Source of the DNA: Saccostrea cucullata
Taxonomy: Eukaryota
DNA: 64,000 bases
Assembly: GCF_032062105.1 (NCBI RefSeq)
Contig: NW_026930660.1
Coordinates: 186,001 to 250,000, forward strand
Reading direction: 5' to 3'
Below are positions 61,001 to 64,000 of the stretch, piece by piece. A program made the position numbers and the translations under genes. Below the pieces are notes generated by a model. It saw only the letters and a program-made list of their open reading frames with translations, did not search any database and was not told the DNA's origin. Numbering within the stretch: position 1 is the stretch's first letter; each line of letters begins with the position of its first letter.

Positions 61001-64000
61001 AGAAAAAGAGAGAATTAGTTCCCCTACTTAACATTAAGTATTCTTTTATGTTTTAACTACAGAAGGAGAAAAATCTCAACAAAAAAAACCCTTCATTTTA
61101 TTGGCAATTTTAACTGTTAACATAAAGATAATTTTTTAATCAGATATAACTTCCTGCTTTAATGCTTAACCTACTATAATTTTGTTTTCAACGAAACAAA
61201 ATTCATTGTAAATGGCCCGGAAGAAAACAAAACAAATTTGATTGGCAACACAGCAACTTTTTATTTTATCAAAAATAGAATTTTATTTTAATCGGATCCT
61301 GAGAACCAAGATTTCAATTTTACATGGCCTTAATGCCCTTGCAACTTTTGTTTTTCAACGAATATTTACATGACAACACAGATGTAACCGAATTCTTAAA
61401 TAAAGTTTACCTATTCAATTCCTTAATTTTAAAAACCATTAAACATGTGGATGCATATTGAACTGGGAACAAATCAAAATCTAAAAGTGACCAGTCTATG
61501 GGCAGAATCAGCTGATCAGGATACTCACGTCATACTCGGCAAGTGCCGCATGATAATATCGACGGCGGTGATCGCGTCCTGGGGGATTTCCCGGGTGTGA
61601 CCTTGTAGTGCCTCCTCTAGACCAAACAAACTGATCTGCTGCATCCATTTCATTGTGATATTGAACACTCTGTCTTTTCCCTCCCCCGGTAGCGTTACCT
61701 CGAGTTCCACCTGTGTTACAGAGAGAAGGGGAGAGAGGATAGAGAGAGAGCTCACTACGCCTGGCCGGCGACCATCGCTAGGCGACCATCACGCAGACAG
61801 AACAACTGTATCTAAGGTATCACCAGGCAAATAAGCAGCAAACCAGGAAAGTCAATCAATACACACAATTTCTTTACAAGTATTACATTTCTTCAATAAA
61901 TAGCTTCCCATTTGCTGCTTGATTTCTCTAGCGATTAGCTACTCCCTCACCGACTGTTCTCCTGGGGCTCAGCCAGTCAGTGAGGGGCAGGGTTAGTTAT
62001 ACCTACTCCCCACTACACCAGGGGGGGACACAATGCTCCGCTATACTTACTTCATGCTGGGCAGATGCCTCATTATGACATCCAGAGCCTGTATCGACTC
62101 ATACGGAATCTGCTGAGCTCGCCCCTCTAGAGCTTCCTCGAGGGCGTACAGGCTCACCTGTGTCACCCATTTGATGCCCACCTTAAACACCCGGTCTTTA
62201 CCTTCCCCGGGTAAGGTGACCTCGAGTTCTACCTATTACAGGAACCAAATCACATCAAATACATCACATTAAGGTCTGCTGGGGTAATAATGTATTGTAA
62301 AGCGCTTTGAGTAGCACACATTACAGCAGCCACACAATCACTGTCAGACATAGATGTACAACTCTATGTCACAAAACTGCTAGTTTCTCAAGAATAATTT
62401 GACAGAGATGTACAACTACAGTTCATGAAATTGTAAGTTTCTCAGGAATACAGAGATGTACATGTACAATTGTATTTCATTATTGTTTCACATGCAGGAA
62501 AACATTATTTTTACACAGATGAAGTAATTGTATCCTATTACGATGCTGATTTCTCTAGAACTGATTTAACACATTTAATATGTTTGTAATAGGCCAGCTG
62601 AATGTATCAGGTGTGAAGGTAATAGATAAAACTTTCATCAGTACATTAAACATACATATACAAAAAATCTGCAAAATAATTTAGATTTCTAATATGTCTT
62701 CTAAAACATACAAAGAAACAATAAGAAGTTACTTATAAAATCTGTCATTTTTGTGTACATTCATGAATTATATTTCATTTTGAATAATTTCACACTGAAG
62801 GCTTCTAAAGTGCTATAAATGATTAAGTAGGAGACTGAGGAAATGACCCCGACACTGACCTTGTCTCGACCAATGGGAAGAGGATCTCGGCTGTACAGAT
62901 TTTTGCGTCCGTCAAACACCGGTTTCATTCCTGAGAAGATTTTCTGACTATACGCTGTGACCATTGTTTCTATTATTTCTCTGAAAAATAACACAGAAAC
63001 AACATGAAATTAAATTGCTGATTTACATATAATTTAAGAAAAATAATTTAAATACAAGGATATAAAATGAAAATCTAAAATTTCTTAAAATCATCAAAAA
63101 AATTTATCATTCAAAATTTCTTTGTACCATGTGTGAGCACAAACTTGTGAGTATCCATTACCTAGTTTTGTTTTTTATTGACATTCCCTTAGAGCTTGAT
63201 ATCAAATAACCATTTCATTGAACACAAACTCTTTATTGATATCTTCAAAATACTGTGCGTTATGGTAACTGTTGCTGTGGATATACTGACCTATTGACCC
63301 TCCTTGGACATTTATCAGGCACAATGGAAATATCGTAGTGGTGTATTACCCCCTTTGGAATTCGCACTTGGAAGTGATTGGCGTGCAGCATGATAGGTTT
63401 CCCCTCTGTCCCATAGTTAGGACGGGGCGGACATATAAAGTCAGCAGGTCTCGGGGGACCGGGGGGCCCTGGGGGTCCGCCTGCTGGGGGTCCAGGAGGG
63501 GGCTGAGGTGGCGGAACTGTAAATAGGTCAAATGTAGCTTAATAATGTACGGTAATTTGAGCAACTTATATTGCTTGGAAATGGCAGAATAGTTTGAATT
63601 CATTATTTAAATGTTCCTCAAAAAAGTTTCATTTTTTTTCTCAAATTATGATTCATGAGATTTCAGACTTCTGCTAGAAGAGAATCCTAGGTGATTATCA
63701 CTATATATAGGAATGACATATAGGTGAATGTTCAAAAATAACTTACAGGCGAATCCTCCCTCTGGTGGCTGAACGGGTGGGAATGCCGAAAAGGGAATCG
63801 AAGTTTGGCCTAAAAATAAACATTACATCATACAGCATAACACATAGCACAAGCTCAAAATAGGGACAGAATTTCAGAAAATCAAATGTAAAACCATAGA
63901 CCAATGAGGAAACCTGAATATCAATAGAAATTTCCTGGGTTTCCGTCTGATGACTTACCATCTGTTGGGAAGGAGGTAAATGGAAGTCCAGAAGATTGAC
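37051..64000 (-). CDS. AGO2: Argonaute (miRNA-class AGO clade, argonaute-2-like); start codon beyond the right edge
   Basis: GT-AG exons in transcript order: 63959-64000, 63747-63809, 63291-63516, 62860-62980, [62051-62232 or 61529-61710], 58374-58510, 57459-57593, 57180-57267, 56912-56995, 56434-56497, 54297-54368, 52084-52131, [51427-51549 or 50911-51033], 49872-50005, 49273-49457, 48757-48916, [48365-48455 or 47700-47790], 38568-38762, 37995-38231, 37481-37680, 37051-37159. Phases join into one ORF of about 897 aa ending VMYFA*. N, PAZ, MID and PIWI motifs are present ([48 protein letters not shown]). Confidence 0.97.
41146..41684. mobile_element. Harbinger-type MITE
   Basis: TIRs tgccctgttcacacg / cgtgtgaacagggca, flanks TAA/TGA, and internal aatgcgaa/aattcg repeats. 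Confidence 0.75.
43598..44404. mobile_element. CAGG-terminated (hAT-like) non-autonomous element
   Basis: TIRs caggctctgacaaat / atttgtcagcccctg, with subterminal cacttgcccgtgggcaagtg at both ends. Confidence 0.65.
44630..45011. mobile_element. MITE
   Basis: TIRs cagagctgccaac / gttggcagctctg with tataaa on both flanks. Confidence 0.7.
47034..47232. mobile_element. TACTGTA...TACAGTA MITE (related copy at about 58794-58987)
   Basis: TIRs tactgtatactgggaaattttcgc / gcgaaaataacgctgtatacagta. Confidence 0.7.
47350..47724. repeat. 50-bp minisatellite derived from the 3' end and donor of the Asp exon
   Basis: Unit tgcagcgatggagggtttactggggtcagtataaagtgaaatgaacttac. Exon-end/donor junction copies at 47650, 47600, 47550, 47500, 47421 and 47371. 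Confidence 0.92.
47700..47790 (-). CDS. AGO2: Argonaute PIWI alternative exon, catalytic Asp variant: [30 protein letters not shown]
   Basis: 91 nt, tttacag| ... |gtaagt. GAC codon at 47748-47750. Confidence 0.93.
48365..48455 (-). CDS. AGO2: Argonaute PIWI alternative exon, Asn variant: [30 protein letters not shown]
   Basis: 91 nt, tttctag| ... |gtaagt, same phase as 47700-47790. AAC codon at 48413-48415. Confidence 0.85.
48932..49052. repeat. 38-bp tandem repeat x3 just upstream of an Argonaute acceptor
   Basis: atcagatattaaggaggctgggggtcaacatataaacc at 48932, 48970 and 49008. Confidence 0.85.
50911..51033 (-). CDS. AGO2: Argonaute L2 alternative exon b: [41 protein letters not shown]
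   Basis: 123 nt, tttag| ... |gtaagg, phase 0/0. Confidence 0.88.
51427..51549 (-). CDS. AGO2: Argonaute L2 alternative exon a: [41 protein letters not shown]
   Basis: 123 nt, cttag| ... |gtagga, phase 0/0. Confidence 0.88.
53089..53649. mobile_element. TTAA-flanked MITE (Kolobok-like)
   Basis: ttaa-ggggagacaggg ... ccctgttcctcc-ttaa. Confidence 0.6.
54830..56240 (+). repeat. 166-bp Cg170-like oyster satellite array within a HINE-like element
   Basis: Period 166 (cttttctggcccag at 54881 and 55047). The unit contains ggttcttgagaagaagatttt and tgtggcccc, and the array ends in (GACA)n. Several units are garbled. Confidence 0.8.
56629..56701 (-). other. tRNA-derived SINE head or tRNA-Thr(AGT)-like pseudogene
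   Basis: GCCTGGACAGCTCGGTGGTTAGAGCACTGGACTAGTAATACAGGGGTCCCGGGTTTGATTCCCGGTCCAGCCA has A- and B-box-like motifs, but the T-loop reads TTTGA and the stems are imperfect. Confidence 0.6.
57869..58324. mobile_element. Harbinger-type MITE (TTA TSD); solo right end of the same family at about 61200-61330
   Basis: TIRs ggccatataaaattgaaatcttggttctcagg / cctgagaaccagggaattaaatttagatagcc, with TTA on both sides. Confidence 0.7.
61529..61710 (-). CDS. AGO2: Argonaute N-domain alternative exon b: [60 protein letters not shown](T)
   Basis: 182 nt, cacag| ... |gtgagt, with a (CT)n polypyrimidine tract upstream. Confidence 0.9.
62051..62232 (-). CDS. AGO2: Argonaute N-domain alternative exon a: [60 protein letters not shown](K)
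   Basis: 182 nt, aatag| ... |gtaagt, same phase as 61529-61710. Confidence 0.9.

Follow-up and report, generated by a model that had tools for sequence, protein, structure and literature searches.

Tandem homologous exons in an oyster Argonaute gene form a candidate either/or pair within the N-domain motif that conditions slicing

Tandem-duplicated, mutually exclusive exons are well known, and the cassettes of insect Dscam and 14-3-3 are examples. We analyzed a 64,000-nucleotide stretch of the Saccostrea cucullata genome (NCBI RefSeq assembly GCF_032062105.1, contig NW_026930660.1, positions 186,001 to 250,000 of the forward strand), which is referred to here as the window and numbered from its first letter. 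The window contains a microRNA (miRNA)-class Argonaute gene on the minus strand, running from ~63.5 kb to 37.05 kb. Two exons in the N-domain region of this gene, designated exon A and exon B, have the anatomy of such a pair. Like other members of the class, they are adjacent and homologous, they have equal length and phase, only one of them can be included if the frame is to stay open, one copy is canonical and the other diverged, and both copies are conserved. They are unlike the class in that spliced use is seen here for one member (B) only, and unlike Dscam in that competing intronic RNA pairing was not found at the oyster pair. As far as we found, it is the location of the pair, within a motif that conditions slicing, that is new.

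The closest protein system is human AGO2. Its residues 44-48 and 134-166 are described, in a review passage, as two N-terminal motifs that are needed if catalytic activity is to be complete (PMC6987405), and the 134-166 boundary of motif II used here is taken from that passage. A second N-domain region is needed for AGO4 slicing, and residues 137-150 at least contribute strongly to cleavage, according to PMC4174435. Excerpts of PMC5714244 describe how long aliphatic residues of motif II form a hydrophobic pocket for M47 of motif I, stiffening the N-L1/L2 hinge, and note that in AGO3 the motif II residues are short and helices alpha2 and alpha3 are separated by an insertion. The initial annotation of the window had treated AGO2 134-166 as an N-domain motif with a part in slicing, and these three papers bear it out. 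The oyster pair resembles AGO2 motif II, which was defined with AGO2/AGO3/AGO4 chimeras, in that the same protein segment is affected and in that long-versus-short aliphatic residues are exchanged, the type of change tied to hinge rigidity in the excerpts of PMC5714244. It differs from the human case because the human variants are separate paralogous genes, with an inter-helix insertion in AGO3, whereas the oyster variants are of equal length and would be produced by splicing from one gene. In addition, human AGO2 has M47 in motif I, whereas the oyster equivalent, HFQVR, has Val.

Isoforms of a single Argonaute gene with possibly different roles are described for Caenorhabditis elegans CSR-1. 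However, these isoforms differ by an N-terminal extension, not by a swap of homologous internal exons (PMC8421154). No description of alternative homologous exons within an Argonaute gene was found in the portions of the literature that were accessible, and the available text of a bivalve miRNA-pathway paper (PMC4793324) has 0 occurrences of "splic."

When P0055, a full-length Argonaute protein from the search of 50%-identity representatives described below, was compared with the window by tblastn, its matches followed one exon after another between 63442 and 37054. In this search and in the list of open frames, three exon positions of the gene are duplicated (62232/61713, 51549/51033, and 48454/47789). 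Exons A and B are the first of these. The features around them, in the order of transcription, are as follows.

63291..63516, minus strand: motif I exon, carrying the equivalent of AGO2 motif I and common to both isoforms (contig piece 63291-63516)
62860..62980, minus strand: constitutive upstream exon, ending in phase 0 (joints 62980/63291 and 61710/62860; tblastn of P0055)
62233..62859, minus strand: intron upstream of exon A, with a 54-nucleotide tandem repeat (families D1 and D2 at 62346-62479) and a dispersed repeat
62051..62232, minus strand: exon A, 182 nucleotides, N/L1 exon copy of the canonical type, with junction codon AA/G (Lys)
61711..62050, minus strand: A-B intron, 340 nucleotides, with a strong polypyrimidine tract at the B acceptor
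61529..61710, minus strand: exon B, 182 nucleotides, the derived copy, spliced in sampled RNA, with junction codon AC/G (Thr)
58374..58510, minus strand: constitutive downstream exon, encoding G/YTPVGRSFF...MMLNID (joint 58510/61529; contig 58374-58508 of RNA run X1; tblastn of P0055)

Each exon has AG just before it and GT just after it, with GTAAGT as the donor of A and GTGAGT as the donor of B. They are identical at 118 of 182 nucleotides and differ at 64. At the codon level, 20 of 60 codons differ nonsynonymously and 25 only synonymously, leaving 40 of 60 residues identical. The initial annotation had reported that the first 16 residues and the IMRHLPSM end are the same in both exons, with 20 substitutions packed between them and a K/T junction codon. 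Sequence comparison confirmed each of these points: residues 1-16 and 53-60 are shared, all 20 substitutions lie between them, and the G at 58510 of the downstream exon completes the split codon to AAG (Lys) after A or ACG (Thr) after B. The claim that the 182-nucleotide length enforces exclusivity through the reading frame was also upheld. Inclusion of A and B together shifts the frame of B, which then runs into a stop after 4 codons; when both are skipped, translation of the downstream exon ends after 15 codons. Transcripts with both exons or neither would thus reach an early stop, so that exactly one exon is needed for an open frame. Judged by its anatomy, the A/B locus is a tandem-duplicated, frame-enforced either/or pair.

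The exons align end to end with residues 113-172 of human AGO2 in phmmer searches (A, expect value [E] 7e-24, 85.7 bits; B, E 3e-17, 64.9 bits), so that AGO2 numbers equal exon positions plus 112. Homologous N/L1 fragments carry the Pfam domain PF16486. The 20 differences between A and B span AGO2 residues 129-164. Sixteen of them fall within motif II (134-166) and five within 137-150. Six of the 20 are changes of aliphatic size: V130I, I132M, V135M, V138I, L162V, and V164I in AGO2 numbering. The equivalent of motif I is encoded outside the pair; alignment to human AGO1 and AGO2 chains places HFQVR (query residues 23-27) at AGO2 44-48, where AGO2 has FFEMD, and the Val at the M47 position is also found in human AGO1 (YFEVD). 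A Foldseek search placed the AlphaFold model of exon A on human AGO2 chains with template modeling (TM) scores of 0.72-0.76 over 60 columns. By model element, three of the differences lie at the end of strand 2, four in the connector, two in helix 1, five in the loop, and six in helix 2.

The duplication of A and B looks old, and both copies look to have been under long purifying selection. Between A and B the proportion of differing silent sites (pS) is 0.91, which is saturated, and the proportion of differing nonsynonymous sites (pN) is 0.19. Ten silent differences lie within the 16 identical first codons and six within the last 8, and therefore the identity of the flanks has been kept by selection and not by gene conversion. 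Polymorphisms among those listed are all silent, including 4 of 4 in exon B. In a tree of 117 rows, the A type, the B type, and the type of a paralogous gene each formed one clade, with support values in the Shimodaira-Hasegawa-like approximate likelihood ratio test (SH-aLRT) of 95, 99, and 94, respectively; the branching order among the three clades, with 60 columns, had a support of 31. In the B clade the stem is long (0.44) and the tips are short. The pattern is that of an exon B that changed fast once and has been conserved since, next to an exon A that never left the canonical sequence.

Comparison with homologs gives the same picture of one canonical and one derived copy. A search of representatives clustered at 50% identity returned 282 proteins (E up to 0.001), of which the best 150, mostly exon-sized fragments, were examined. 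Set against 100 non-vertebrate homolog rows, exon A agrees with the most common residue in 52 of 60 columns and exon B in 42 of 60. At the 20 differing columns the majority residue is that of A in 13 and that of B in 3. Seven B residues (K129N, T136Q, Q160T, L162V, V164I, V130I, and A142G) are nearly absent elsewhere in 228 homolog rows that include vertebrate-like ones, and V130I and V164I each occur in 3% or less of these rows. Outside this gene, the B type turned up in just two protein clusters: P0251 (40/41) and P0037 (54/60), the latter beside a different intron flank. P0037 is the one clearly B-type sequence among the best 150 of the 282 representatives. At the 20 differing columns P0037 has the B residue in 15 and the A residue in none. 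P0163 and P0172, two relatives of the A type, match A at 50 of 54 residues and keep the A residue at 18 and 19 of the 20 columns. Both run into a stop directly after the exon, and thus they derive from genomic reads and not from mRNA.

Three exons of this kind exist in the S. cucullata genome: A, B, and one in a paralogous Argonaute gene. The last is a single copy of 182 nucleotides on another contig (G000:C23227:203334-203513; L002:1501-1682), with AT/GTAAG at its junction. It is closer to A (48/60) than to B (40/60), and its type recurs in P0006, P0182, and P0218. Among proteins of 33-105 amino acids, searches with the A and B peptides yielded neither an exact match to one of the exons nor a fragment joining A to a neighboring exon. 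A metagenome scan with exon B returned two loci, a single A-like exon (L004) and a distant one (L005), with no pair in either.

RNA data were evaluated over positions 58250-63650 in four runs: X21, X22, and X23, which are raw-read poly(A) runs with a listing threshold of 3 reads per joint, and X1, which is available as contigs. Of the 24 runs listed for 61500-62260, 20 contain part of the region. The joint of the upstream exon to B (62860>61710) was represented by 4, 9, and 8 reads in X21, X22, and X23 (21 in total), and the joint of B to the downstream exon (61529>58510) by 3, 8, and 9 reads (20 in total). Run X1 contained spliced contigs for both joints, at depths of 48.3 and 39.6. Neither an A>B joint nor a joint skipping both exons was listed in the four runs. 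Exon B is the default exon in these runs. At positions -25 to -3 before the exon, 19 of 23 nucleotides are pyrimidines for B and 13 of 23 for A; the stronger tract of B fits its use as the default exon.

Several stretches of the surrounding introns have RNA coverage of another kind. In the intron at 62233..62859, depth is without exon structure and loose read ends occur at 62269. This intron also has three tandem copies of a 54-nucleotide unit at 62346-62479 and an adjoining repeat at 62263-62339, in which many reads run on into unrelated sequence. In patches at 58250-58430, 58793-58990, and 61298-61332, RNA depth is high, loose ends are numerous, and "opposite strands" joints occur (58250/61117). 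Dispersed repeats with expression at other sites are the most likely identity of these patches.

We lean toward a genuine pair of alternatives, with little more than even confidence: B serves as the default, and A, itself conserved, has a minor or conditional role. On this explanation one 182-nucleotide exon would have been tandem-duplicated long ago in the miRNA-class Argonaute gene, and exactly one copy would be spliced into each productive transcript. Transcripts with both or neither would stop early and presumably undergo nonsense-mediated decay. B is the fast-diverged, lineage-restricted exon with the strong polypyrimidine tract, and the default in the four RNA runs. A, with the canonical animal sequence, a consensus donor, and a weaker acceptor, would serve as a minor or condition-specific alternative, as its conservation suggests. 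The swap would alter 20 residues of the N/L1 junction, the region that corresponds to motif II, in strand 2, both helices, and the loop between them. If motif II acts here as in human AGO2 and AGO3, where it packs on motif I and determines how rigid the N-L1/L2 hinge and the N channel are, the likely effect would be a graded change of slicing efficiency, duplex unwinding, or passenger ejection with the fold unchanged. Tuning of slicing or unwinding by the A/B swap is plausible by this analogy.

A number of observations weigh against this reading. The initial annotation had proposed counting junctions to both exons, and the counts that established the joint to B gave no 62860>62232 reads at the 3-read threshold in the three raw-read runs; no joint of exon A on either side was listed in X21-X23 or found in the X1 contigs. 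Depth over A (62051-62231) was 0, 1.18, and 0.64 in X21, X22, and X23, versus 5.1, 11.2, and 11.5 for the bin with most of B. Overall, A depth is ~6% of B depth and stems from roughly two molecules. In X1, exon A is confined to a 746-nucleotide unspliced contig (61683-62263) of intron-level depth (8.66), which differs from the window in the A-B intron by eight single bases and one insertion. Runs X21-X23 come from a single study. The A- and B-type relatives are known as separate protein records, and these may come from different genes or species. The positions of the differences are mostly family-variable columns, and the predicted structures of A and B give no hint of a functional difference. 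Finally, a search of the introns for selector and docking RNA pairing of the Dscam kind found nothing convincing. Exon A therefore ranks as a minor form at most in these samples, with unproven splicing.

The 340-nucleotide A-B intron exceeds what steric exclusion allows. Because the intron is too long for that mechanism and no convincing RNA pairing was found, exclusivity would seemingly come from the frame and from decay of the wrong products. Only two inverted repeats, both weak, were detected in 61300-62900. One of them, of 14 nucleotides and 86% complementary (62042-62055 and 62519-62532), has one arm over the exon A donor and is within chance expectation; it could mask this donor.

The rival explanation that survives best, although we consider it unlikely, is that exon A has been retired. 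In this case B would have taken over after the duplication, and A would be unspliced in S. cucullata too recently to have decayed. The lack of A junctions in the four runs and the low A depth favor this possibility, as do the weaker polypyrimidine tract of A and its confinement in X1 to an unspliced contig. However, the open frame of A, its AG acceptor, and its consensus GTAAGT donor are all intact. P0163 and P0172 each have ~4 amino-acid changes of their own, whereas exon A of S. cucullata has none (tip length 0 in the tree), and the polymorphisms listed in A (2 of 2) are silent. Furthermore, coverage of A in X22 and X23 is above that of the neighboring intron bin, whose depths of 0.03 and 0.02 correspond to ~3 nucleotides per read. 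Read in terms of bin depths, such a short run into the intron fits spliced A reads, because the intron and the next exon both begin with GTA.

It is also possible, if rather improbable, that both exons are used and the two proteins are equivalent, the pair being kept for regulation of expression, either through subfunctionalized splicing control or as a poison-exon device in which joint inclusion of A and B would reduce Argonaute output. The stop 4 codons into a double inclusion would suit such a device. The initial annotation had suggested predicting the structures of both variants, and no difference emerged. AlphaFold models of the single exons (alignments of ~100 rows) share strands 2-7 and 14-19 and helices 28/29-35 and 44-56, and the mean predicted local distance difference test (pLDDT) score is 89.1 for A and 88.0 for B. 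The same annotation had held that the exons differ specifically across the region that licenses slicing. The concentration of differences within 134-166 stands, but the flanks are near-invariant throughout the family and the differences follow the variable columns: mean entropy is 1.57 bits in the differing columns versus 0.50 bits in the identical ones (Mann-Whitney p 5e-6). A shuffle test for the confinement of all 20 differences to columns 17-52, which gave 0.00015 with entropy weights, was not relied on because start-codon artifacts in fragments inflate the entropy of the first columns. Although a pure poison exon could do without a conserved peptide, A stays close to the family majority. 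Equivalence of the proteins is further opposed by the retention in P0037 of rare B residues (K129N, T136Q, L162V, V130I, and V164I), which speaks for selection on the B peptide, and by the changes that B shows at 3 of the 29 columns with conservation of 90% or more.

An assembly artifact, with alleles or paralogs collapsed side by side, would be conceivable in a fragmented assembly of 23,869 contigs in 1.17 Gb, but it is very improbable because the X1 contig from an independent run spans the B start, the intron, and all of A, because the number of nucleotide differences and the saturation of silent sites are far above allelic variation, and because the real paralogous exon is found on a different contig.

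The genuine-pair reading can be extended to the other duplicated positions of the gene. The second duplicated exon, at 51427-51549 and 50893-51033 of the minus strand, is in the L2/MID linker region. The third, at 48353-48454 and 47697-47789 of the minus strand, is a PIWI exon with GANVTH (Asn) in one copy and GADVTH (Asp) in the other at the first catalytic position. An open frame at 47278-47436, ending in ...NPSIAAVS, may be a decayed third copy of the PIWI exon. Farther upstream in the gene, at 54994-56069, a peptide theme recurs across several minus-strand open frames, and therefore a repeated element lies within the intron there. It is possible, though we hold it doubtful, that the whole gene is programmable by splicing, with motif II, L2, and PIWI Asp/Asn cassettes yielding as many as eight proteins that differ by degrees in slicing and unwinding. 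Equally tentative, within that extended reading, is the suggestion that the motif II hinge is switched between a canonical version and a lineage-specific one with more bulky aliphatic residues.

At a minimum, the main transcript of this oyster Argonaute gene has a lineage-specific, strongly diverged motif II, and the canonical copy adjoins it, almost unused. Determinants of slicing and passenger ejection outside the catalytic tetrad are known mainly from artificial human chimeras. If A and B are a genuine alternative pair, a natural gene that swaps this N-domain segment would provide a ready, evolution-tested pair for chimera-type experiments, and splicing would be found to diversify the core of the RNA-silencing machinery. 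If the whole gene is indeed splice-programmable, splicing in this oyster would do what vertebrates do with four AGO paralogs.

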